Assembly (NCBI GenBank): GCA_001179505.1 | Contig: CDMY01000396.1 | Coordinates: 24,416-88,415 of the forward strand | DNA length: 64,000 nucleotides | DNA from: Vitrella brassicaformis CCMP3155 | Taxonomy: Eukaryota; Protista; Chromerida | Direction of reading: 5' to 3' | Part shown: in pieces, positions 1,843-26,458 of the stretch | How positions within the stretch are numbered: the stretch's first letter is position 1 | Layout of the letters: the number at the start of each line of letters is the position of its first letter | The notes under the pieces: model-generated | Told to the model about the DNA's origin: nothing | The model's database searches: none | Seen by the model: the letters and a program-made list of their open reading frames with translations, nothing else | Translations under genes and position numbers: made by a program

Positions 1843-2965
1843 TCAGAGCCAGCCGAGCCCCAGGCCCTTGGTGGTCGGCTTGAATTTGACTTTGGATCGC
1901 ACACTTGGGCGGTAGGCCAGCTGCGGGCCGTGCAGAAAGTACTTGACGCCCATCACGACCACACTCAGCACCACCTGGCCCTTGACCACCGTGCGAAGGC
2001 GGCTGTCCTGGCACATCAGCCGAATCGTCTGCTCGGTCTCCTGCACGATAATGCCGTCAAGACCGATGTAACTCGGCACCCTGGCCTTGTCCACCCTCAC
2101 AAATGCGCCATGCAGGTCGGCCGCCGCCNNNNNNNNNNNNNNNNNNNNNNNNNNNNNNNNNNNNNNNNNNNNNNNNNNNNNNNNNNNNNNNNNNNNNNNN
2201 NNNNNNNNNNNNNNNNNNNNNNNNNNNNNNNNNNNNNNNNNNNNNNNNNNNNNNNNNNNNNNNNNNNNNNNNNNNNNNNNNNNNNNNNNNNNNNNNNNNN
2301 NNNNNNNNNNNNNNNNNNNNNNNNNNNNNNNNNNNNNNNNNNNNNNNNNNNNNNNNNNNNNNNNNNNNNNNNNNNNNNNNNNNNNNNNNNNNNNNNNNNN
2401 NNNNNNNNNNNNNNNNNNNNNNNNNNNNAGTCCACCCTCACAAATGCGCCATGCAGGTCGGCCGCCGCCAGCCGGCTGCCCCTCTCGGTGATGGGCAGCC
2501 GCTCGTGCATCAGCTGCTCGGCGTACTGGCTCCACAACTCATTCAGGGGGAGGCAGTCGGCATAACTCAGTGTGCCGTCTTGCAAGTCGTAGAGGCCCCG
2601 TCTCCTGGCCTCGTTGTTGCTCATCTTGGTGAGCCGCCGTGGTGGCTTCTGCTTGGCCTTGGGCTCTCCCTGCTGCTGCTTCTTGCTGGGCTGGTTGTCC
2701 AGCCGCATCACTCGCCCCTTGACCTTGCCCTCGTACACAGCGGCCGGGTCATCCCGCATCGACGGCACCGCGTCCGTCAGGAAGTCGAGAGCTTCCTGAC
2801 AAGAGCAGCATCGTCCGCCGTGGACGAAGGGGGATGGGGATGCTCTGCCGAAGGCCCTGGCGCGTAGAGAGGGTGGCTTGGGCGTGACCCATCCACATTT
2901 TGCCGATCCAGATATCGCTCAGCGGCAGCCCGCGCATTCTTGCGGGACACGTTGTGACGACTCAT
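1843..2965 (-). pseudogene. POP4: RNase P/MRP subunit p29 (POP4/Rpp29), copy 1, frameshifted near the 5' end
   Basis: Rpp29-type C-terminus (ADLHGAFVRVDKARVPSYIGLDGIIVQETEQT...YRPSVRSKVKFK). A 14-nt insertion at 2788-2801 relative to the 23676 copy stops the ATG-2965 frame after 62 aa. Spans an N gap. Confidence 0.8.
2129..2428. other. Assembly gap (300 N) with overlapping flanks
   Basis: TCCACCCTCACAAATGCGCCATGCAGGTCGGCCGCCGCC occurs on both sides (2090-2128 and 2431-2469), so the contigs really overlap. Confidence 0.9.
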
Positions 2966-3501
2966 TCCCTTTCTTTGCCCTTTTTGCCATGGCGAGCTCA
3001 GTCCCGGGCTCGCATAATTGCAAGCTCAGCCCTCAGCTCGCAAAATATTCCCTGCTTTTTCCTTCGTCAGACGTTGAGAGCTCATCGAAGGGAAGCGACC
3101 TATGCGACAAAATCGCTAAACGAATGTGCCACTTTCGCGAGAAACGGGGTGATCGAGTGAGGATCGAATTCCTCTTTTTCTCGAACCTGGCAAATTCGTT
3201 TGCGATTTTGTCGCGGGAGGCGCTGCTCTCTGTGGCTACCAGTATACTCAGTCAAAGAAAATTCGCAAAAATGGGGAAATGCCAAAAGGGGCACCGGGAA
3301 GCTGAGCTCGCACGCTGACTCGTGCTCTAAGAAGCTCAGCAGACGGCAGCTGATGTGCTCGTTGATGTGCTTGGATGGAAGATCTGCCAAAATCGACGCC
3401 AATGCTGCTCGTGGGATCTGTCAAGACGAATGCAGTTCTATCTCTGGGTGATCAACATGCTCGCCCACTCTGTCAGCACAGCCTTCGTCCCCCTCCTGCT
3501 G
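2966..3501. repeat. Bidirectional promoter module, copy A (POP4 <- -> RAP gene)
   Basis: High-identity reverse-complement matches to ~13575-14105 and ~23158-23675, also visible as near-identical spurious ORFs (2878..3318 vs 23323..23763). Confidence 0.9.
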
Positions 3502-11757: not shown

Positions 11758-13565
11758 CTATCCGATGAGCGATGCCCGCTCCTCAGGCCGCTCGACAGCG
11801 TCTTGTGTCACACCACCGGCAGCTGCCTTCCTCCTCTTTCTCATGAACCTCTGATGCTGTGGGAGGTCACTGATGGCCGCCACGTGGTACTCGTGCGGCC
11901 AGTGCGTGAGCGTCGTCCCCTCAGCCACAGCGCGGCGACGCTGCGCAAGCACCTGCAGCCACCATGTCATCAGACACAGACACTGCAAAGGTGCCGTGAT
12001 GGCGGCGTCAGCCAGCCACGGACCTGCGGCGTCGCCCTGCTCTTGGCCGTCATGCATACGTATGCCACCGCACGCAGCAGCCGATCTGTCGGGGAGGTCG
12101 GCTCCTTCAATGCGGGCGTATTGCAGTGAACCGTCCTGACACACACACCGCCCCCATTCCCCACCCCGTATTAACATGTGTGTGTGTGCGCCTCTATCCT
12201 CGCGGACTTGTGTGTGTGTTTACTTACCGAGAGTCCCACAAGACCAGGTCGCCAGCCTGACAGCTGACGAGACGCGGCGGGAGGGGGCGGGGGAGTGAGT
12301 CGTCCAACAGAGAGGAGGACGACGGATTGCCATTCGCCACAGAACGGATGAGCGGATCAGATGGAGGGATAGGAAGAAAATCGCCCGTAAGCAGACTGAC
12401 ACAGACAGAACAAAAGGAAGGGCAACAAATCAATCACCGACACTCCTGGTGCGCAGCGCACAATGTGTGTGGTATTTTCTCATATATGTGGGTATGTCCT
12501 GACTGACCCGATGGCGCCGGCCCGTTGGCTGAGGTGGCGATGGTGATTGTGGGAGCGGGGGATGACACACAAACCTCCCGTTGTCGCATCGCTCGCGTAC
12601 AGTGACACGAAACCCTGAAAGACACAAACAAAAGGCAGGCCACACACAACACAACACAAGACACATGTCTGTCTGCCCTGATCCCTGATGCATTCATTGA
12701 CCGGTGTGTATGTGTGTGTGGATATCCTATCCCCCAGCTGATCTGACCTGCACACACTCGAAGCCCGGCTTCTTCCGGGCGTCCTGGTCGATGTGCCACC
12801 AGCCCCCTTTGGTCTTCCAGTGCCCTGCACCCTCCCTGTGCCACGGCCGATACAGACCCAGCCCATCAAATGACGTCAGCAACTCGCCGCCTTCGACGCC
12901 CCAAACGCTCTGGAAGGCCTTTTGCGTGAGGTGGTGTGTGCGGACGGCCCACATGACCTCCGAGTGGCCCACAGCCATCGAGTGGATAGCACCGGTGGCG
13001 AGGTCGCCAAGCCAACCGATGTCGTCCCATGTGGATGGATCATGCCTGCAAGAAAAGGATGGATGGCAGACACGGCACATGAATGGGATGCATTTTTCCA
13101 TCTATCTATCTCAATGCACGTGACCTGCTGTTAGCTGACTGACCTGGTCAGGTTTTGGTTGGTGCTCTCGAGCCAATCCCAAACGCCCTCACGGCACCTC
13201 TCCAGCATCGCTGCATCCATCACGTCCCCGATGACGCAGTAGCCCTCCTGCCTCAAGTAACCCATTGCCTCACCCATCTGCCGCTCGTCCAGCACAGAAA
13301 ACCGCTTGATTGCCGGACACTCCAGCTGCAATGGACCATTGCCGCCCTCTCCCTCCCCCTCTCCCCAGAAGACCCGCCGCACACAGCGCGAGATGTCGGT
13401 CTCGCATTGCTTCTTCGTGGCCTCGTCGAAGGTGAGGCACTGCCGCATGAACAGGGGGCCCGCGTGAAGCGCCAGACCGGCCAGATCCCACAGGGACACG
13501 TTGGGACGCGAGAGAGGACGACGATGGGCAGCGGTGGGCTGATGCTGTGCGACGCTCACTTTCAT
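11758..13565 (-). CDS. Phytanoyl-CoA dioxygenase (PhyH)-family Fe(II)/2OG oxygenase, multi-exon
   Basis: YLRQEGYCVIGDV; LLTSFDG; HxD motif WWHIDQD; GDLVLWDSR|TVHCN (distal His); RAVAYVCM; TTLTHWPHE. Confidence 0.85.
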
Positions 13566-14190
13566 TGCCTTCACAGCAGGAGGGGGACGAAGGCGGCGCT
13601 GACAGAGTGGCCGAGCATGTTGATCACCAGAGATAGAACTGCTTCTTCTTTACAGATCCCACGAGCAGCATTGGCTTCGGTTTGGCAGATCTTCCATCCA
13701 AGCACATCAACGAGTGTCAGCTGCCGTCTGCTGAGCTTTTTAGAGCCTGTAAGGCACCAATTGCGCAGTCGGTGTGCGATCAGCTTCCCGGTGCCCCTTT
13801 TTGCATTTCGCAATTTTGGCGATGTTTCTTAAACAGAGTATGCTGGTAGCCACAGAGAGCAGCGCCTCCCGCGACAAAATCGCAAACGAATTTGCCAGGT
13901 TCGAGAAAAAGAGGAATTCGATCCTCACTCGATCACCCCGTTTCTCGCAAAAGTGGCACATTCGTTTAGCGATTTTGTCACATAGGTCGCTTCCCTTTGA
14001 TGGTCTGACGAAGGAATGAGGTGAACATTCTGCGAGCTCGGGATTGAGCTCGCTTTTGCGTGCTCGGGACTGAGCTCGCCATGCCAAAAAGGACAAAGAC
14101 AGGGAACGAGTCGTCGCAACGTCTCCCGCAAGAATGCGCGGGCTGCCGCTGAGCGATATCTGGATCGGCGGGACGTTGATGCGTTACGCC
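13100..14190. repeat. ~1.1-kb direct repeat, left copy (PhyH intron 1/exon 1 + promoter copy B + POP4 5' remnant)
   Basis: Aligns in the same orientation with 22686-23760. Confidence 0.9.
14106..14190 (+). pseudogene. 5' remnant of POP4 with the start codon mutated (ATG to ACG)
   Basis: GGGAACGAGTCGTCGCAACGTCTCCCGCAAGAATGCGCGGGCTGCCGCTGAGCGATATCTGGATCGGC matches the POP4 start at 23676 (GGGAATGAGTCGTCAC...). Similarity ends at ~14190. Confidence 0.85.
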
Positions 14191-14530
14191 CGCTCAAAGG
14201 AGCGGAGCCGCAGTTTTTTCTTGTCCACTTCAGGCAGACGATGCCATCGCTCAGAGGACTCTCGCTCTGTCCGGCAGGACAGCGATCCTGTGATCATCTC
14301 TCAAAATTGCATCTCTGCTTGCGCGTCGTGCCTTCCCTTCTAGTGGCGTCATTGTTTGGCTTATCGACTCATCGGTGGAGTGATTTGCTTGTCGACAGTC
14401 GCTGCCTTTCCACCGGTAAGCACATGCACGAGAGATGACACGTGCGAACGACACACTCACTCAGTGCGCATTGTGTGTGTGGTGGTTTTGAGGCGCTGTG
14501 TGGGCTGCCGTGAGGACAGCGGGTGGCACT

Positions 14531-17480
14531 ATGAGCAGCACATCGGCATCAGCTGCTGCAAGTGGGCTGACCTACTGGCTTAAGAGAGAGGGAGGGGAGG
14601 ATCCACTTATGTGGTGTGGTGTTCGTTGGTCAGGCCGCGAACATATTGGAGTCGGCAATCGCAGCGGTGCTCTCGTAGACCAGTCGATGAGTGCGGCAGG
14701 CAGCACGTCTGTCGCCGGCAGCCTGCTCAACGCCCTCAGGAACCTCTGTGTGCTGCAGTCGCGGGTATGCAGAACAGAACAGAGAAGAGCCACAGCTACA
14801 TCATCCCTATCCGTCGCGCGCACGTGTGCGCGCGTGTGTGTGTGATCAGGGTCAAGCGGTTCTCGAATCGCTTTATGCAGTAAGGCACACAGGCAGCTGG
14901 CTGGCCCTATGTGGCTCATTCTGGTGTGACGTGTGTCATTCACAGGGGTCGCCCATTAGCGCGGAGATGGCCAGCGGAGCCCTCTCGGATCTCGCATCTC
15001 ACACAGAAGGCTGCGGCTCGGCCATCGCACGGCTGGATAGCCTAGTGCAGGTCGGAATGATGCCGATAGCCTCTCTGTGTGTATGCCTTCTCTCTCTGCA
15101 TATAATGCTCTGTGTGTGTTCTTGTTTTCGGTTCAGGGCAGCAGTGGTGCGCGGGAGACGACTGAGGAGGCCTCCGACGCTGCACATGAGGGGGTACGTC
15201 TGTTTCGCTCTAATACTGACATGACGGCCTGTGAATTGCGTGGTGTAGTTTCTGTCGTGCCCCAAGGGGGACTTGGCCGGCAAGAAACTCCACAACACCG
15301 GGGGCCAAAAGGTCAGTCAGGGAGGGAGGGGCCACCTGTGCTGTGTACAGGTGTTTGGGCGGTGTCTTGTGCCTTGGTGTGTGCAGTCTAGCAAGAAGAG
15401 CGGCAAGACCTCGTCCAAGCCATCGTCAGCCAAATCGGTAGGTAAACCACACTAAACCACACTCACGCACCGCACCAAACGCAGATCTGATCTCCACTCC
15501 ACTCATACGACCCTCCTGTCGTATGCTTGCCGTCTTCTCTCTCCAAATCAGGAGGGCGGCAGTGGTGTCAAGCGTCCGCCCGGCAAGTTCATCCTGTTTT
15601 GCAACGAGCGCCGCGCGGCCCTGAAGCAGGAGATGGAGGCCGAGGGCGTCGATGCCGCACCCAAGGGCGTCAACAAACGGCTCGGGGAGGAGTGGAACAC
15701 CATGGACGAAGACGAAAAGAAGGTCAACTCGGACGGGGAGAGACGTTCACATGGATGGACGCTCAGCTCACATGGTGCACCGCACCGTGTCCTGTGTATG
15801 TGTTGTGGCTGTCAGCCGTACAAGGACAAGGCTGAGGAGCTGCTCGCTGCCTGGAAGCAGAGTCAGTGAGCCGACAGACCGTCCGACAACGCACAACCAC
15901 ACACATGTGTCCATTTGTGTGTGTCGTGTCGTGTCATGTTTGTCAGGCACTGGCGGCGATTCCTCGTCCAAGAAGGGCAAGAAGGGCAAGGGCGACGAAG
16001 ACGATGAGGACGAGGGGGAGGAAGACGAAAACGTAACACAACAAACACGACCACCCCATCGGCTATTCGTCTGTGTGTCCATGGATGTCGCTATCAGGAA
16101 GCCGTGCAGGGCCAGGGTGGTGCGAAGCGTTGCCGAGTCGATGGCCTTCCCGAGTCGTCTGGTGCTGCCCAGCCCGTCTTCCTGCCTGGGCTGTCCCTGC
16201 CCACCGACGTCATGCGCGACGTATTCCTACCTCTCATCACCCCCAACGACTCCACTGCCCTCTGCCGCACATCCGAGGCGGTCAGCAGCGCACTCGAGGC
16301 CGGCGTGGCCGCCGACATCGACAGCATCATCCGACACGACGGCCTCACCGGCGTCATCGGCTACCGCCAGGTGCGCCAGTCGACCGGCGTCCGTCGTCTG
16401 GTGCGCCGACTGCGACTGATCCGCCTCCACTACCTGATGGTGGCGGGGGGCGACTGGCGCGGCAGCGTGCCGCTGCTGCGGCTGGCCAAGAGCTGCGGAC
16501 GGGTGAAGCAGCTGCCCATCGAGCTGACGAAGAACGACCTGCAGCACGTGGGCAGCAAGGCCGTCATCGACAGCCGGCCGCCCAGCATGAGGCAATACGC
16601 CCTCTTCAGCCACCGACTGAGCCAGAGGATGCGGCTGACGCGTGATGCCGGCGGGGGGGACGAGATGGGCGGGGATGAGGTGACGGTGTACACCGACCAG
16701 ACGGTGCCGGCCAGATATCGAGATCGATTCGATCCAGACGATCCTGTGTGCGAATGTAAGAGAGGGAGGGCAAAGCCCACAAGAAAGGCAACTCGACCTA
16801 GATGGTCTTCTCCCTCCCTGTTTCCGTGTCTGCAGACGGTGGTGTCGTGTACGATGGCTTCAGAGGAATGATCATCAAGAGGTGCGATGCGGCACCGCTC
16901 AAAGTGGAAGGCACACACAAGACGGCAACCTGCTGTTTGCTCTTGCCTTCCCAGCATGGCCTTCGGGTCATCGCGTTTGGTGTCAAACCGCTTCTACAAC
17001 GGGCGTCCGCCCTCTGCTGAGTGTCACCGCATCAATGTCCTGCTCGACCAGCAGCCGCCCCTGTGGGACTGTCGCACCATCGGCTACCACCTCCACACAC
17101 CCCGCCGATTCGTCATACTCTGTGGCGACGAGGAGGGCGATGACTTCCTGGCCTTCATCGAGATGACCAAGTACACAGGACACATGTACCCTGATGGGGC
17201 GGCAGACATGTACCTGTACACCACCGAGGCGCCCCAGAGCGGCGTAGGCGCTGCTGGCTCCCCCCTGACAGTGTCCATCGCGCGCAACAAGATGGGCGAC
17301 GACATCAGAGCCCTCCCAGACGTCGACGAGGCCTCCAATACAGGTACACGCGACTGCAAAGTGAGACCCACACAGGGGCAAGACTTTCTCTTCATGTGTG
17401 TGCACAGCTGTCGCGGCGGTGTTAGTGTAGCTGATGTGGAGTGACGTACACATCTGACGGGTGGACGACTCTGAGATGAG
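14531..17480 (+). CDS. Lineage-specific F-box-like family protein with an upstream HMG-box (paralogue 1)
   Basis: Starts MSSTSASAAA. HMG box VKRPPGKFILFCNERRAALK...KRLGEEWNTMDEDEKK|PYKDKAEEL. Splices in frame via an acidic exon to LPTDVMRDVFLPL...WRGSVPLLRLAKSCG. The 3' end is uncertain. Confidence 0.65.
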
Positions 17481-18323
17481 CATGTGACCTGGCAATGGGC
17501 GTGGCGTGGCTGGTGGGGGGATGCAATGGATGCTTCTGTAGCCGTCCACTTTTTCTATGCGTGTTTTTTCTCACACAAATCCAATCCCTACACGCGATCA
17601 TCAATGCATGGATCCCGAGCCGTTCTTCAGCATGTATGGCATGTATCCACCGCATCCAGTTTTGTGTACACACACTGGTTGTCGTCGGATTCATATTCGT
17701 GCAGGCCAGGCGGTGCGTGGTGAACTCCTTGATCTGACTGACGGGCTGGTTGAGTGCTTTACCATTCAGATGTCATGTGGTCACATGCCTGCCAGTCATA
17801 TGGATCAGGAGTCACATGCGCAGTAGCATCACGCAAACTATACAGACAGACACGCACACACACACGCATCAACCAGACAGGCAGCCAGGCGCATGTTTGT
17901 CATCCATCAGACATACACAAACCCTCACTGCACCAACCCACTCACACAATCACGTCAGCGGCATGGTTTCGATCTCGCGCGCTGAAAGGAGGAGTTCGGC
18001 AGTTGTTGGTTTTTGCGCGCGTCCAGACGAAACCATCAGCTCAGAGGGCTCCCTCTGTCCCGCACGACAGAGATCTCATCGCATTCTCTGCCGTGTTCGC
18101 AATTGCGTGTTCGTCGTGAGCCCTCCCGTCTGGCGGAGTGCTGCGCGGCGCTGTGATTGATTGGCTTATCGACTCATCGTTTGACTGATTTGCTCGTCGA
18201 CAGTCGCTGTTCTCTCGCCGGTGAGCACATGCGCGTGGGAGCGACGCACTCACTGCGCCATTGTGCGTGTGCGGTGGTCTTCAGGCGTTGTGTGGGCTGC
18301 CGTGAGGCCAGTGGGCGGCAGCT

Positions 18324-20593
18324 ATGAGCAGCACATCGGCATCAGCTGCTGCTGCAGGTGGGCTGACTGGTTGGAAGAGGGAGAAAAGGGTTAGTTGTGT
18401 GGTGTGGTGTTTGTGTCGGTCAGGTAGTGTCTTCTATAGCAGTGGCAGTAGTTCGATCGGCACACAAGGAGATGAGCAGTCGGTAAGCCAAGATGCGGCC
18501 ACACAAACAGGCAGAGACCGTCATGCATTCGTCTGTTTCTCATGACAACGTCGCGTGTGCTGTGCAGAAGTCGTCTGATCCCGTGGCGCGTCTGGTGAAG
18601 TTACACCACCAGGTAGGTAGGTGGCTTGGCTCCAGACACAGACGAGAGGACATGTGGGCAGACAGGGAGATGGATGGCGGGTGTGACATGTCGTGTGTGT
18701 TGTGCGTGCAGGCAATGGGGATCTCTCTGACCACTCATCCAACACAGTCGCCTCGCAGACAGAGATGGTGGCACAGGTACGATGCCACGTATGCCGTGTG
18801 TGTGTGTGGATATCTTCCTTCGTGACGTATTGCTGCTTTTGCTTCAGGGCCCTGGCAGCCGATTTGCCAACAAGGCCGTCACTGATGAGACCACTAAGGC
18901 CACAAAGACACAGAAGAAGGTACGACAGCTGCTGCACCGTGCTGCTGACATCATTACGGCCAACGTATGCTGTGCTGCGCGTGTCAGGTTGACGCCATGG
19001 GGCTCTTGCGGCAGCTATACGCCCTGCCCGAGGCCCTCATGCACGGCACACTCCTCCCCCTCATGGACCAGCAGCACCTGCACACCGCACTCGCCAAGGT
19101 CAGCAGTGCCCTCTGCTGCACCTCACCGGCAGTCGGCAGCGCCGTCGCGGCCGCCCTCATCCCCCAAATCGACAGCATCATCGAACGCGACGGCCTCACA
19201 GGCGTCATCGGCTACACCCAGATCCGTTGGCACCTGCAGCGGCAGCCGGGTCGGGCGATGGACGTGTGTCGTCCATTCCGGCTGATCCGCCTCCACTATG
19301 TGGTGGTGACAGGGGGCGACTGGCGGGGCAACGTGCCGCTGCTGCGGCTGGCCAAGAGCTGCGGGCAGATCCAGTCGCTGCCGATTCAGCTGACGAAGCA
19401 CGACCTGCACCGTGTGGGCAGCAAGGCCGTCATCGACAGCCGGCCGCCCAGCATCCGCCAGTACAGCCTCTTCAGCCACCGACTGGGCGAGGGGATGCGG
19501 CTGACGCGCAACGCCAACGGGCGGGAGATGCTGGGTGGGTATGAGGTGACGGTGCACACCGACCAGACGGTGCCGAGGAGGTATCGAAATCGCTTCGATG
19601 CGGCCGATCCCCCGTGCCGATGTGAGAGAGGGGAGGGGAAAGCACCACAGGAAAGGCAACTTGACATGGATGGTGTCTGCCGCTGTGTCTGTGTGTCTGC
19701 AGACAATGGTCTCGAGCTCAGCAGCTTCAGAGGACTGGTCATCAGGAGGTACGCAGCGACTGAAATGAGAGAAGAAACAGTACAGCAAGGTGTCGTGTTG
19801 TCTGTCTTTCCGCTCCTTGCTCTTTCAGGTTGACAGAGTGGTCGTTGCGTTGTGTGTCGTATCAGAACTGGCATCTGCCCTCTGCTGAGTGTCGTGACAT
19901 CGGTGCCCTGGTCGACCAGCAGTCGCCCCTGTGGGACGGCTGCCGCACCATCGACTACAGCACCATCGGCGGCTCATACCGACTCGTCATACTGTGTGGC
20001 GAGGAGGAGGGCGACAAGCGGCGTACATCGAGATGGCCAAGGGGTCTTATCGGCCGGCATCCATCTCCCTCTTCACTACCGAGGCGCCCCAGCAGGCCGG
20101 CGATGGCCCTGCTGCCTCCACGCAGGCAGTGGGCATCGCCCGCAACAAGATGGGCGACGCCATCACTCTACTCCCACAGGTCAACGAGGCCATCAACACA
20201 GGTACACACGAATGAAAAGGGGCGGGGGACGCAGCCACGCACACACATTTCATGGAGTGCGCCTTCGTGTCGCTCTGATGTTCAGGTGTGTTTGCGTGTT
20301 CGGCCACAGAGCGGCGACCGACCTTCCAGATCTTCTACAGAAGCATCCCAGGTCAGACACATAGACTCTCACGAACCAGTCTCCACATTGTGACTATTTT
20401 ACATGCAGGCAGGACCGGAGTACTGGACGTCCACCCCAGCGACACCATCAGGACTGTCAAGGCCAAGATTCAGGCCAAGGAGGGCATCCGCATCAGCTGG
20501 CAGCGACTCAATTATGGTGGCAAGCCGCTCGAGGACGGCCGCACCCTGTCGGACTACAACATCCAGAAGGAGAGCACACTGTTCCTGCTGTAG
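18324..20593 (+). pseudogene. Paralogue 2 of the same family: no HMG box, C-terminal ubiquitin domain, frameshift at ~20016-20023
   Basis: Same MSSTSASAAA start, same core (WRGNVPLLRLAKSCG; KAVIDSRPPS) and a similar upstream region (17975-18380 vs 14186-14580). The frame switches between GEEEGD and AYIEMAK. Last exon [22 protein letters not shown]...[17 protein letters not shown]. Confidence 0.7.
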
Positions 20594-21384
20594 CCTGGGG
20601 GGCGGCATGCAGATCTTCGTCTAGACACTCTCTCACTGGTGGGTCAGGCAACACACACGACCTCACCAGCGGGACTCTGCAAACGTGTGACTTAGTCGGC
20701 GTGGTGGGCGTGGCACGCATCGATCGAGAGAGACAGGGATGGATAGATGAGTAGATGCGTGTGTGTGTGTGTAGGTATGCGCATTGGACCGACCTTGGCT
20801 CCCTCCGTTGAATGTTCATTCGAGGTGTGTGTGATGTATGTATACGCAGCATCGCTTTTCAACACTTCTTGTCTTTGCATGTGTGTACTTGACGGATTCA
20901 ATCCGTGTGTTGGTCGGTCACATCATCCTTCACCCTTTACAGACCCCAGACACGCCAACTAGACAGACAGACAGACAGATCAACCAGCCAGACAACCAGG
21001 CGCATGTTTGTCATCCGTCATTCACACACACACATGCACACACCCTCACCACACCAATGAAAACTATGAAATGACACTAACTGGTGTGGGGGGACGGTAT
21101 GGATGGTAATGCGTGAATCCATCTGTCTGTTTGACTGTTCCGCGTCGATAGAGTACACCAGACCAGATACATGGGCGGTGGAAAATCACTCACTAACCGA
21201 ATGCACCGCACCAATCGGCCGCTCCTCTCCCATCTCCCACCTGCCGTAACTAGCGTACACGCCGATACAGTGAGTGCACTGCCCGGACACGCAATACGAT
21301 ACACTGCAGCAGAAATACAACACACAACTCCCCCAACCCCCACATGAGGGAAAAACCCTCCCTCCCTCTCTCCCCTCTGTCATG

Positions 21385-22681
21385 TCAGCTCTTCTTGTAC
21401 GCCTGCATGAGGTCGTCAGCGATAGAGTAGGCAATCATGGCCGCCAGCGCCAGCATCAGCCCCACCGTGGCCCAGAAGGGCCGCCGCTCGATACACGAGC
21501 ACCCCCACACACTTAATGCGCTCATGCCAGTCCACATACTGCCGCAGCAGCTGCTCCAGCCGCTCCGCTTCAGACGCCGAGTGCAGCGTCGACGCGTGTG
21601 AGCGGGGCGACTCCTCTTCCCCAGCCGCTTCATGCTCGTCTTTTGCCGGCGACGTGTCGTCGGGTAGGTAGGGCGCCAGTTTGTGCCTCATCCGCCGCTT
21701 GCTGCCTTGGTGCCGCTCCTCCCTGCCACCCTCCTCAGCGCCGTTCATCTCAGCTGGTGGCCGACGACACGCGGGAGTTTTCCTGGGTGTCGTCCGCGAC
21801 CGTCACGGCGTCGGACTGCCTGCCCGCATCGTTGTGGCAGCCGCACCCGAGCCGCCCTCCTCGTGTGCGTGTGGGAGTGGCTGTGTCCTGGTCTTGCGGG
21901 CGATAGCCAGCAGATACACCACAGCGGGCAGGAAGTAGTTGGCCAACACACCTGCCGTGATAGAACTGCACACACAGAGAGAAAGAGAGACACACACACA
22001 CTGCCGAAGAGCCGCCGATTGGACAGGGCCCACGCGACCAGCCAGGGGGCACAGCAGCCGCAGAAGAACGCCCCCTGCTGACCGCACAGACCACTGTTAT
22101 AGAGGTTGTAACGACTCGCAATGGCCATGACAGGAATGCCGGGCAGCACGGTGGTGAACGAAAACGTGAGCATCCCCGTCGACGGCTCGTTGGTCATGTA
22201 CACGAACGCGTTGCTGCTGTTGAGAGCGGGGTACGCCACACACCACCAAGGCGAAGCTGAAGTAGAGAAACGCGGAGAGGATGGCCGACATCCACACGAC
22301 GGGCATGACTCGAGTGGACGGGAGGACCTCGTTGCACCAGGAGGGGATCAGCACCACGTAGGAGTAGGAGGCGACCATGATGCCGAAGACGGCGCCGTAG
22401 CCAGTGTCGCCGACTAGAGGGGGGAAGGTCACTGGGGAGTGGGTGCGCTCCTCCTGCTGGAATGACCGAATGATCGACGAGATGATGATCAGGCCGATGG
22501 CGCCGAACTGCAGAAAAAACGTGACGATCTGAATGTACATGTTCTCATTCAGACTGACACACACATCGACACCGACACACACTCCCACAACCGCCGCTCT
22601 TTCGCCCGGTGTGCTGTCATTTCTCTCATACTTACACACTTACTTGAGGTAGCTCATGGGCAGGCACAGCAGCGCCGTCAG
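21385..22681 (-). CDS. C-terminal half of an amino-acid/polyamine permease (Aa_trans-like), probably spliced to the PhyH exon-1 copy upstream
   Basis: LPMSYL(N)LNENMYIQIVTFFLQF; VFGIMVASYSYVVLIPSWCNE; LPGIPVMAIASRYNLYNSGLC; several hydrophobic helices. No N-terminal half in the window. Confidence 0.75.
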
Positions 22682-22685
22682 TCTG

Positions 22686-23760
22686 TCTATCTCATGCAAT
22701 GCACGTGACGTGACCTGCTGTTAGCTGACTGACCTGCTCAGGTTTTGGTTGGTGCTCTCGAGCCAATCCCAGACGCCCTCACGGCATCTCTCCAGCATCG
22801 CTGCGGCCATCACGTCCCCGATGACGCAGTAACCCTCCTGCCTCAAGTAGCCCATTGCCTCACCCATCTGCCGCTCGTCCAGCACAGAAAACCGCTTGAT
22901 TGCCGGACACTCCAGCTCCAATGGACCATTGCCGCCCTCTCCCTCCCCCGCTCCCCAGAAGACCCGCCGCACACAGCGCGAGATGCCGGTCTCGCACTGC
23001 TTCTTCGTGGCCTCGTCGAAGGTGAGGCACTGCCGCAGGAACAGGGGGCCCGCGTGAAGCGCGAGACCGGCCAGATCCCACAGGAACACGTTGGGAGGTG
23101 AGAGAGAACGACGATGGGCCGCGGTGGGCTGTGGGACGCTCACTTTCATTGCCTTCACAGCGGGAGGGGGACGAAGGCGGCGTTGACAGAGTGGGCGAGC
23201 ATGTTGATCACCAGGGATAGAACTGCATCTAAGAGCAGCATTGGCGTCGGTGTCGGCAGATCTTCCATCCAAGCACATCAACGAGTGTCAGCTGCCGTCT
23301 GCTGAGCTTTTTAGAGCACGAGTCAGCGTGCGAGCTCAGCTTCCCGGTGCCCCTTTTTGCATTTCGCCATTTTGGCGATGTTTCTTTGACTGAGTATGCT
23401 GATAGCCACGCGGGGCAGCGCCTCCCGTGACAAAATCGCAAACGAATTTCCCAGGTTCGAGAAAAAGAGGAATTCGATCCTCACTCGATCACCCCGTTTC
23501 TCGCGAAAGTGGCACATTCGTTTAGCGATTTTGTCGCATAGGTCGCTTCCCTTTGATGAGCTCTCAACGTCTGACGAAGGAAAAAGCAGGGAATATTTTG
23601 CGAGCTGAGGGCTGAGCTTGCAATTATGCGAGCCCGGGTCTGAGCTCGCCATGGCAAAAAGGGCAAAGAAAGGGAATGAGTCGTCACAACGTGTCCCGCA
23701 AGAATGCGCGGGCTGCCGCTGAGCGATATCTGGATCGGCAAAATGTGGATGGGTCACGCC
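22686..23760. repeat. ~1.1-kb direct repeat, right copy (PhyH exon 1 copy + promoter copy C + POP4 start)
   Basis: Near-identical PhyH exon-1 translation (22721..23281 vs 13131..13574) and promoter sequence. Confidence 0.9.
22733..23149 (-). CDS. Duplicated PhyH exon 1, the first exon of a putative chimeric gene
   Basis: MKVSVPQP...YLRQEGYCVIG...WLESTNQNLSR. The donor GTCAGT is retained; no further PhyH exons follow. Confidence 0.7.
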
Positions 23761-24443
23761 CAAGCCACCCTCTCTACGCGCCAGGGGCTTCGGCAGAGCA
23801 TCCCCATCCCCCTTCGTCCACGGCGGACGATGCTGCTCTCGACTTCCTGACGGACGCGGTGCCGTCGATGCGAGATGACCCGGCCGCCGTGTACGAGGGC
23901 AAGGTCAAGGGGCGAGTGATGCGGCTGGACAACCAGCCCAGCAAGAAGCAGCAGCAGGGAGAGGCCAAGACCAAGCAGAAGCCGCCACGGCGGCTCACCA
24001 AGATGAGCAACAACGAGGCGCGGAGGCGGGGCCTCTACGACTTGCAAGACGGCACACTGAGCTATGCCGACTGCCTCCCCCTGAATGAGTTGTGGAGCCA
24101 GTACGCCGAGCAGCTGATGCACGAGCGGCTGCCCATCACCGAGAGGGGCAGCCGGCTGGCGGCGGCCGACCTGCATGGCGCATTTGTGAGAGTGGACAAG
24201 GCCAGGGTGCCGAGTTACATCGGTCTTGACGGCATTATCGTGCAGGAGACCGAGCAGACGATTCGGCTGATGTGCCAGGACAGCCGCCTTCGCACGGTGG
24301 TCAAGGGCCAGGTGGTGCTGAGTGTGGTCGTGCTGGGCGTCAAGTACTTTCTGCATGGCCCGCAGCTGGCCTACCGGCCTAGTGTCCGCTCCAAAGTCAA
24401 ATTCAAGCCGACCACCAAGGGCCTGGGGCTCGGCTGGCTCTGA
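23676..24443 (+). CDS. POP4: RNase P/MRP subunit p29 (POP4/Rpp29), intact intronless copy 2, 255 aa
   Basis: Complete ORF containing LNELWSQY, ADLHGAFVRV, GLDGIIVQETEQT and LHGPQLAYRPSVRSKVKFK. Confidence 0.85.
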   Translation: MSRHNVSRKNARAAAERYLDRQNVDGSRPSHPLYAPGASAEHPHPPSSTADDAALDFLTDAVPSMRDDPAAVYEGKVKGRVMRLDNQPSKKQQQGEAKTKQKPPRRLTKMSNNEARRRGLYDLQDGTLSYADCLPLNELWSQYAEQLMHERLPITERGSRLAAADLHGAFVRVDKARVPSYIGLDGIIVQETEQTIRLMCQDSRLRTVVKGQVVLSVVVLGVKYFLHGPQLAYRPSVRSKVKFKPTTKGLGLGWL

Positions 24444-24900
24444 ATGAATGGATGGATGAATGAAGGGAGGGAGGGAGGGAGGGAGGTGTGATATCCTTCG
24501 TGTCTACGCTACCGCTATGCTTGGCTGCACTGAAATGTACTGTATAGCTAAGAGATTCTCAAGTGTCTTGCTGGAGTGGAGTGGTGTATGAAAGAAAGGC
24601 GCTGGACACGGCGGAGGTGTGGCGTTCATTCCGTGTGTGTGTGTGTGTGTGTGAACCACGGTTGTGCTTTCCTATCACACCATGAATCGATTGGAGTCGA
24701 ATACCTCACGACACCTACATACATATATCCAGTACAGACAGACAGACAGACACGGACACCGCGTCAAGTACTCTTATTTGTTTTTTCCTGCATGGATCAC
24801 GAGCACGGGTGCTTGACCACCAACCAACTGAATGTATGTGTGTGTGTGTGTGTACACACCTACTCGATCTGTGCAGGTATGGATGCGTATACTGTGTACT

Positions 24901-25200
24901 NNNNNNNNNNNNNNNNNNNNNNNNNNNNNNNNNNNNNNNNNNNNNNNNNNNNNNNNNNNNNNNNNNNNNNNNNNNNNNNNNNNNNNNNNNNNNNNNNNNN
25001 NNNNNNNNNNNNNNNNNNNNNNNNNNNNNNNNNNNNNNNNNNNNNNNNNNNNNNNNNNNNNNNNNNNNNNNNNNNNNNNNNNNNNNNNNNNNNNNNNNNN
25101 NNNNNNNNNNNNNNNNNNNNNNNNNNNNNNNNNNNNNNNNNNNNNNNNNNNNNNNNNNNNNNNNNNNNNNNNNNNNNNNNNNNNNNNNNNNNNNNNNNNN
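24901..25200. other. Assembly gap (300 N) between two near-identical ~1.1-kb segments
   Basis: 23779-24900 is repeated at 25201-26311. Confidence 0.9.
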
Positions 25201-25856
25201 CTTCGGCAGAGCATCCCCATCCCCCTTCGTCCACGGCGGACGATGCTGCTCTCGACTTCCTGACGGACGCGGTGCCGTCGATGCGAGATGACCCGGCCGC
25301 CGTGTACGAGGGCAAGGTCAAGGGGCGAGTGATGCGGCTGGACAACCAGCCCAGCAAGAAGCAGCAGCAGGGAGAGCCCAAGGCCAAGCAGAAGCCACCA
25401 CGGCGGCTCACCAAGATGAGCAACAACGAGGCCAGGAGACGGGGCCTCTACGACTTGCAAGACGGCACACTGAGTTATGCCGACTGCCTCCCCCTGAATG
25501 AGTTGTGGAGCCAGTACGCCGAGCAGCTGATGCACGAGCGGCTGCCCATCACCGAGAGGGGCAGCCGGCTGGCGGCGGCCGACCTGCATGGCGCATTTGT
25601 GAGAGTGGACAAGGCCAGGGTGCCGAGTTACATCGGTCTTGACGGCATTATCGTGCAGGAGACCGAGCAGACGATTCGGCTGATGTGCCAGGACAGCCGC
25701 CTTCGCACGGTGGTCAAGGGCCAGGTGGTGCTGAGTGTGGTCGTGCTGGGCGTCAAGTACTTTCTGCATGGCCCGCAGCTGGCCTACCGGCCTAGTGTCC
25801 GCTCCAAAGTCAAATTCAAGCCGACCACCAAGGGCCTGGGGCTCGGCTGGCTCTGA
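25201..25856 (+). CDS. POP4: POP4/Rpp29 copy 3 (5' end in the gap); may be an allele or uncollapsed haplotype of copy 2
   Basis: Same ORF and same 3' flank as copy 2, but 7 diagnostic sites match copy 1. Confidence 0.6.
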
Positions 25857-26458
25857 ATGAATGGATGGATGAATGAAGGGAGGGAGGGAGGGAGGGAGGT
25901 GTGATATCCTTCGTGTCTACGCTACCGCTATGCTTGGCTGCACTGAAATGTACTGTATAGCTAAGAGATTCTCAAGTGTCTTGCTGGAGTGGAGTGGTGT
26001 ATGAAAGAAAGGCGCTGGACACGGCGGAGGTGTGGCGTTCATTCCGTGTGTGTGTGTGTGTGTGTGAACCACGGTTGTGCTTTCCTATCACACCATGAAT
26101 CGATTGGAGTCGAATACCTCACGACACCTACATACATATATCCAGTACAGACAGACAGACAGACACGGACACCGCGTCAAGTACTCTTATTTGTTTTTTC
26201 CTGCATGGATCACGAGCACGGGTGCTTGACCACCAACCAACTGAATGTATGTGTGTGTGTGTGTGTACACACCTACTCGATCTGTGCAGGTATGGATGCG
26301 TATACTGTGTACTTGCTCGCCTCAGCTCTAGTGCGTGACACAACTCAGCACCGATTTCAGGGTTTGACAAACCCTGCACCCGACCTGCACCCCTTAACCC
26401 ATCTCGCCGACCGGGCGGTTGGCCTTCATCTCTCGCGAATGCCGCCGTCTCTTTCATC

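Follow-up and report, generated by a model that had tools for sequence, protein, structure and literature searches.

When the promoter and first exon of one gene come to lie in front of the truncated remainder of another, is the product a new gene, and does it still work? The question is raised by a locus in the chromerid Vitrella brassicaformis CCMP3155, within a window of 64,000 nucleotides (nt) that forms positions 24,416 to 88,415 of the forward strand of contig CDMY01000396.1 (scaffold C396:24416-88415; NCBI GenBank assembly GCA_001179505.1). All coordinates below, unless a scaffold is named, count from the first letter of this window. On the minus strand, exon 1 of a gene related to the phytanoyl-CoA dioxygenase (PhyH) family precedes the 3' part of a transporter-like gene, an arrangement that an earlier note, made from the letters alone, had taken for a very young fusion gene with an intact frame. 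Comparing the window with the whole assembly (72,700,666 bp in 1064 scaffolds), we found that the locus is a real chimera, that it is already annotated but unrecognized as such, and that the fusion is a by-product of segmental duplication, not a fresh, intact new gene. As to its history, we give about an even chance to a chimera born of duplication-insertion, long kept and now eroding, that is probably a recently dead gene.

A chimera of two parents joined in phase

Both parents of the locus could be identified. The first is the PhyH-like gene CEM09860.1, from which a 1.1-kb block occurs twice in the window; as the earlier note had proposed, exon 1 of the chimera duplicates the parental copy. 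The duplicated block (A', against the parental block A; Table 1) carries exon 1 with 612 nt of upstream or promoter sequence before it and the first 51 nt of intron 1 after it. The second is a transporter-like gene, present at full length on scaffold C218, where it extends upstream through three and a half more membrane helices. An 8.3-kb segment of the window (B) is collinear with part of C218, and the truncated transporter forms its right-hand end. The order at the locus is A'-B-A, with the insert between two copies of the 1.1-kb block and the end of A (14191) about 43 nt from the start of B-type sequence (14235). Plain tandem duplication was considered as an origin and rejected, given that there is no homology between the sequence from 23762 onward and that from 14192 onward.

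The minus-strand letters quoted in the earlier note proved correct on re-reading, and the junction within them is clean. Specifically, the chimera reads GAGATAGAcAGA, then CTG, then ACGGCG, with transporter homology from 22678; GAGATAGAcAGA matches GAGATAGAtAGA in the parental PhyH intron, while the stretch beginning with ACGGCG matches the C218 exon. Only the 3 nt between the two homologies (CTG) can be assigned to neither.

The two sides can also be joined as a message. A GT-AG intron running from the PhyH donor at 22733 to the AG at 22683, 51 nt in all, joins phase 2 to phase 2, with the frame continuous over the junction, and the frame remains open across this intron and the next (22643-22554) and equals the native frame of the transporter. 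The intron stands as first described, except for its acceptor, which had been assigned to the transporter. The acceptor (..GACAG) ends at 22683, with an A at 22682, and its CAG aligns to a TAG in the parental PhyH intron, whereas the break in the C218 parent falls halfway through helix 4, at 335 nt from the start of a 371-nt coding exon, where there is no AG. Since the parental break is mid-exon and offers no AG, the hybrid acceptor is not a transporter acceptor. Rather, as the alignment shows, it is an AG of the PhyH intron that stands 4 nt from the break and is by chance in phase.

What exon 1 contributes is, as had been suggested, a dioxygenase N-terminus of about 140 amino acids (aa) without catalytic residues. 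In the parent, exon 2 encodes the HxD motif (H-I-D) and exon 5 the distal His (..RTVHC..); neither exon was duplicated, and the chimera has neither the motif nor this His. Lacking any iron-binding residue, the chimera cannot be a dioxygenase, and neither its protein nor exon 1 alone matched PhyH at E <= 1.

The in-phase junction of two parents therefore stands as a chimeric gene, but not as an unreported one, since the same splice is part of a public model. CEM09867.1 (A0A0G4FA66), a protein of 271 aa described as 'uncharacterized' and not flagged as a pseudogene, was the sole protein returned by a word-based search with exon 1. It maps exactly onto 23149-23144, 23029-22734, 22682-22644, 22553-22242, and 21965-21806, and it contains exactly the hybrid intron 22733..22683. 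Gene models in Vitrella were built with Augustus, using RNA-seq junctions from TopHat2 as intron hints (PMC4501334), and this is suggestive of support for the hybrid intron, short of proof that reads span it. Whether exon 1 or the transporter exon was the query, word-based protein searches yielded CEM09867.1 alone, and no transcript-derived or other-strain protein; a scan of JGI metagenomes with CEM09867.1 found no relative, and a literature search by accession found no paper naming CEM09867.1 or CEM09860.1.

Lesions in the transporter part

Lesions were called by alignment to the C218 parent, whose frame is open. In the direction of reading, a 2-nt deletion near 22243 leads to a TAA at 22099-22097, and an in-frame deletion of 18 nt follows at 22165/22164. 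A 70-nt deletion at 22002/22001 then removed the end of the exon together with its native GT donor, and a 40-nt deletion near 21841 creates a premature TGA at 21805-21803, within the shifted stretch that precedes a 29-nt deletion. This last deletion (21761/21760) lies in the tail, as do a loss of 3 nt (21617/21616) and a gain of 1 nt (~21516).

The earlier note had drawn one open frame to the native stop at 21385. With its two introns only, the frame instead closes at the TAA at 22099-22097, giving a product of about 303 aa, and in-frame reading does not get as far as the native stop (21387-21385). The intactness of the frame was lost in the same comparison, the downstream transporter exons having been searched for disabling mutations and found to hold several (-2, -40, -29, +1, the lost donor, and the premature stop). 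At most, the largest product possible today would have 271-309 aa and would consist of a soluble N-terminal piece without catalytic residues followed by three or four helices. A very young fusion gene whose frame is intact to the native stop at 21385 is thus next to untenable. In its favor are the phase of the hybrid intron and the survival of the native stop codon (21387-21385), yet four frameshifting insertions or deletions (indels), a lost donor, and a premature TGA stand between the junction and that stop, and the sequence has diverged from both parents by 9-13% at neutral sites.

Could the junction or the frameshifts have arisen in the short-read assembly of paralogues that are 96% identical? 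The assembly was built from Illumina reads only, with velvet (k = 75), followed by gap filling and automatic correction of bases (PMC4501334), and the -2 and +1 changes sit in a GT run and a T run. The junction, however, lies outside repeats, so that a k-mer graph needs real reads across it; deletions of 70, 40, 29, and 18 nt are not typical base-calling errors; and mis-mapped reads from a paralogue would raise, not lower, the likeness of the copies. We therefore consider an assembly artefact very improbable.

The public model passes through this damaged region in a telling way. It treats 22241-21966 as an intron of 276 nt that begins exactly at the -2 frameshift and has the donor GTGTGG, unlike the local donors GTCAGT and GTAAGT, and it terminates at the premature TGA at 21805-21803. 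Further, it removes 23143-23030 from exon 1 as an in-frame GT..AG intron of 114 nt, while the model of the parent retains the equivalent 120 nt (13446-13559) as coding. Conservation within exon 1 is lowest here, with one 6-nt indel and a ratio of nonsynonymous to synonymous divergence (omega, dN/dS) of 0.61.

Table 1. Positions and composition of the features at the fusion locus and of its PhyH-like parent
Feature	Position	Strand	Description
A' (duplicated block)	22682-23761	minus	BLAST: 88% identity to 13101-14191 over 1117 columns
A (parental copy of the duplicated block)	13101-14191	minus	BLAST and alignment
B (8.3-kb segment)	14412-22678		collinear with C218:89004-97483; right-hand end is the truncated transporter
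Exon 1 copy	22734-23149	minus	416 nt = 138 codons + 2 nt, open; ATG at 23149, ends in phase 2
Hybrid intron	22683-22733	minus	51 nt; GTCAGT donor at 22733 and body from PhyH intron 1
Rearrangement junction	22679-22685	minus	three-way comparison; BLAST limits 22682 and 22678
39-nt exon	22644-22682	minus	4 junction bases + last 35 nt of the parental helix-4 exon
Native transporter intron	22554-22643	minus	GTAAGT...CAG; 90 nt here, 71 nt in the parent
Transporter exon, native frame (helices 5-7)	22242-22553	minus	ends at a 2-nt deletion (GT run, near 22243)
Former coding sequence (helices 8-9) and intron remnant	21966-22241	minus	out of frame after the -2 deletion
Start of last exon (helix 10)	21803-21965	minus	ends at the premature TGA 21805-21803
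Remains of C-terminal tail and helix 11	21385-21802	minus	native stop TGA at 21387-21385
Parental PhyH-like gene CEM09860.1	11761-13565	minus	433 aa, six exons

Age, constraint, and the history of the fusion

The non-coding parts of A and A' differ by 0.093 (52 of 595 sites, with 7 indels), and synonymous divergence lies at 0.10-0.13. Between the transporter fragment and its C218 parent, dS is 0.128 and dN 0.017 in the native frame (omega 0.14), the transporter intron differs by 0.16, and the non-coding parts of B differ by 0.09-0.14. The values for non-coding A/A', exon 1 dS, transporter dS, and the intron agree within error. Divergence of about 9-13% at neutral sites means that the fusion is not very young, contrary to what had been supposed, and the similarity of the values fits a single event that made both the A' copy and the insert.

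The substitutions in the transporter fragment are far from neutral in pattern. The changes comprise 33 synonymous and 15 non-synonymous ones, and the differences fall on the three codon positions as 11:5:33 (chi-square p = 1.6e-6), a bias that persists downstream of the frameshifts. Omega is 0.11 before the first frameshift, 0.09 just after it, and 0.30 in the tail. Even in the annotated 276-nt 'intron', 9 of the 12 differences fall on native third positions (binomial ~0.004). Had the fragment been neutral since the split of A and A', 40-44 non-synonymous changes would be expected, against the 15 seen (p < 1e-5), and the data are compatible with neutrality for only the last quarter or less of the time. 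The third-position bias and the low omega thus indicate that constraint acted on the fragment during most of its existence. The omega of 0.14 in the transporter part may reflect selection on the new gene, but the value counts changes on both lineages together, the assembly holding no outgroup by which to assign them. Gene conversion was rejected as a cause of the bias on the reasoning that conversion removes synonymous and non-synonymous differences alike.

From these observations we propose the following course. In one rearrangement, most simply a duplication-insertion, about 8.3 kb would have been copied from C218 to a site beside the PhyH-like gene, and the same event would have left a second copy of 1.1 kb of the target at the far end of the insert, giving A'-B-A. 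A second promoter, exon 1, and a 51-nt stub of intron would thereby have been placed before a transporter-like gene cut in helix 4, where an AG of the PhyH intron (TAG, now CAG), by chance in phase, could let GT(22733)...AG(22683) splice exon 1 onto the transporter frame. For the greater part of the period that followed, purifying selection would have acted on the fragment in its native frame, and such constraint suggests translation and use of the whole chimera or, at the least, of the fragment. Erosion by frameshifts, mainly toward the 3' end, would have come afterward. The duplication, the junction and its phase, the lesions, and the substitution pattern are observed; the single event, the past function, and the present death are what we infer. 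A single event is favored by the duplicates A and A', the collinearity of B and C218, the clean junction, and the presence in the assembly of just one copy each of PhyH exon 2 and of the 5' half of the transporter.

Several observations weigh against this course. First, 4-5 frame-breaking indels are seen where about 2 would be expected over the last 30% of the time, given the neutral ratio of indels to substitutions in A/A'; the count fits a long neutral period better and is in mild tension with the substitution result. Second, exon 1 shows no significant constraint when its dN/dS is computed against the parental copy, as the earlier note had advised. With dS at 0.099 and dN at 0.032, its 10 non-synonymous and 9 synonymous changes are spread over the codon positions as 4:6:9 (p = 0.36), and exon 1 alone is uninformative. 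Third, the hybrid intron, at 51 nt, is shorter than ten exactly mapped neighboring introns (71-276 nt), and its 3' end is purine-rich; by its length and composition, the 51-nt stretch would be a possible intron, but not a typical one. In the Vitrella genome, the 22,817 genes have a median of 6 introns each, and introns total 16.4 Mb (PMC4501334), figures from which we calculate an intron length on the order of 100-120 nt. Finally, no function readily suggests itself for half a transporter joined to a PhyH stub devoid of catalytic residues.

One potential alternative would dispense with a function for the odd half-protein altogether. Here, a full transporter paralogue and a full second PhyH gene would have stood head to tail, both functional, until a later deletion, from intron 1 of the second PhyH gene into the helix-4 exon, fused them; constraint would then predate the junction, and decay would follow it. 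This explains low dN/dS together with several lesions, and deletion between neighboring genes is a classic route to fusion. At least three events are required, however; the position of the end of A at 14191, about 43 nt from the start of B-type sequence, and the flanking of the insert by copies of A go unexplained; and the rest of the assembly holds no trace of further copies of PhyH exons 2-6 or of the 5' half of the transporter. We regard such a two-step history, with a fusion that was dead on arrival, as distinctly unlikely.

Alternatively, the chimera may still be working as a shortened gene of 271-309 aa, with the PhyH stub as a soluble head on three or four helices, the frameshifts having trimmed dispensable 3' parts. 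The frame is open from 23149 through both introns, a public model exists without a pseudogene flag, the promoter was duplicated together with exon 1, and the retained core is the most constrained part, with an omega of 0.11 ahead of the first frameshift. The 276-nt 'intron' that such a gene would need nevertheless bears coding-type substitutions (9 of 12 at native third positions), so that it was exon until recently; it begins exactly at the frameshift, as it would if a predictor were keeping the frame open; and its donor, GTGTGG, is atypical locally. That this shortened gene works today seems to us possible, if rather doubtful. Equally tentative is the more specific proposal that the half-transporter with its empty PhyH stub, spanning helices 4.5 to 11 and later fewer, was maintained by purifying selection during most of ~0.1 substitutions per site and still acts as a protein of 3-4 helices, for example, as a partner or regulator of the full-length transporter. 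Between the two states, a recently dead gene is more likely than a working one.

Parent genes, neighboring copies, and wider meaning

The PhyH assignment rests on the parent. CEM09860.1 scores above the Pfam PhyH (PF05721) cut-off (30.5 bits vs 22, residues 105-335), and only about the first 36 residues of the domain are encoded by exon 1, the copy of which differs from the parent at 19 of 416 sites plus one 6-nt in-frame gap and encodes protein 91-93% identical to the first 141 residues of CEM09860.1. Exon 2 has hundreds of relatives, and those tested carry PF05721, at 40-50% identity; exons 2-6 are single-copy in the assembly. Both the single-exon Pfam searches and the genome-wide PF05721 scan missed this gene, its identity being recovered through a representative search and its database protein, and a PDB sequence search with exon 2 gave no match. 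Relative to the PhyH family, the chimera is thus alike in exon 1 and differs in having neither the iron-binding residues nor a PhyH match. An open reading frame (ORF) of 121 aa in an ENA metagenome, on an unspliced DNA contig of 2494 nt, is 99% identical to PhyH exon 2. It differs in the flanking intron, and thus points to a second, very close Vitrella genotype in public data, which could serve as an outgroup.

The transporter assignment is of another kind. That the C218 parent is an amino-acid transporter, as the earlier note had called it, is favored by its 10-11 hydrophobic segments, as counted by hydropathy, and by similarity in the ESM Atlas, where all 30 of the 30 clusters nearest to parental exon 3 were Aa_trans (score 0.94, 189-190 shared features) and the N-terminal piece of the parent was also closest to Aa_trans, more weakly (0.85). 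Pfam does not bear it out. No exon of the copy or of the C218 parent matched Aa_trans (PF01490) at E <= 10, in an exon-wise test that is weaker than one on the whole protein; CEM09867.1 had no PF01490 match; and a genome-wide PF01490 scan matched 47 places, with neither the chimera locus nor the C218 parent among them. Nor did a PDB sequence search with transporter exon 3 match a solved structure, and a single-sequence AlphaFold model of parental exon 3 had a predicted local distance difference test (pLDDT) score of 46, too poor for a fold search. 'Amino-acid transporter' is therefore a good lead, drawn from language-model similarity. In its hydrophobic segments and ESM Atlas neighbors, the C218 parent resembles AAAP transporters (PF01490; SLC32/36/38-like), whereas the chimera retains just the part from mid-helix 4 to the end, which the frameshifts have shortened further. 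The 5' part of the transporter is single-copy in the assembly (C218 only). A run of N in C218 (95660-95990) starts about 60 nt past the parental stop codon, so that the 3' flank of the parent cannot be compared with the window.

The surroundings hold further copies. The upstream region of the chimera recurs as a third, inverted copy at 2430-3501 (inverted) and 1843-2128, with 93% identity to 23158-24197 and 86% to 13574-14191. It resembles A' more closely than A does, so that it must stem from a later copying event on the A' side. It stops 7-9 nt short of the position of the PhyH ATG and adjoins the start of a RAP-protein gene, and the promoter-like block has been reused three times over 25 kb. 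Segment B is itself built of two diverged tandem units (16253-17361/19104-20219 and 14235-14634/18142-18541, at 73-77% identity), which carry plus-strand ORFs of 255-288 aa without a Pfam match, and the C218 segment shows the same two-unit structure. Beyond A', a 1.1-kb tandem duplication at 99.4% identity (23788-24900 and 25201-26313) is either very recent or a doubling in the assembly, and an ORF in this region, 24576-25856 on the plus strand, encodes an RNase P/MRP p29 domain (PF01868, E = 5e-19).

Chimeric genes formed by duplication at the DNA level and by fusion of exons and introns are known from Sdic and jingwei in Drosophila and from the segmental-duplication fusions of primates. Like these, the Vitrella chimera has two identifiable parents, both retained elsewhere, and a promoter and first exon recruited to another gene; likewise, the break lies in an intron on one side, so that splicing can give an in-frame message. 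It differs in that its 3' partner was cut within a membrane helix, its acceptor is a chance AG, its product is frame-broken, and the chimera is known from sequence alone.

No new class of mechanism is opened by this locus. It carries, first, a warning for annotation, in that CEM09867.1 is a chimera of two unrelated genes and that a stretch annotated as one of its introns was once coding and is left out so that the model escapes a frameshift. Second, it offers a clean and datable example of how segmental duplication-insertion in an intron-rich alveolate can lead to a fusion through a chance in-phase AG. If the chimera is still working, it would document how a truncated APC-fold fragment can acquire its own function by capture of a promoter and exon. 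The substitution pattern hints that an odd fusion product can persist for a long time before it decays, and these results bear on counts of 'new genes' in chromerid genomes.

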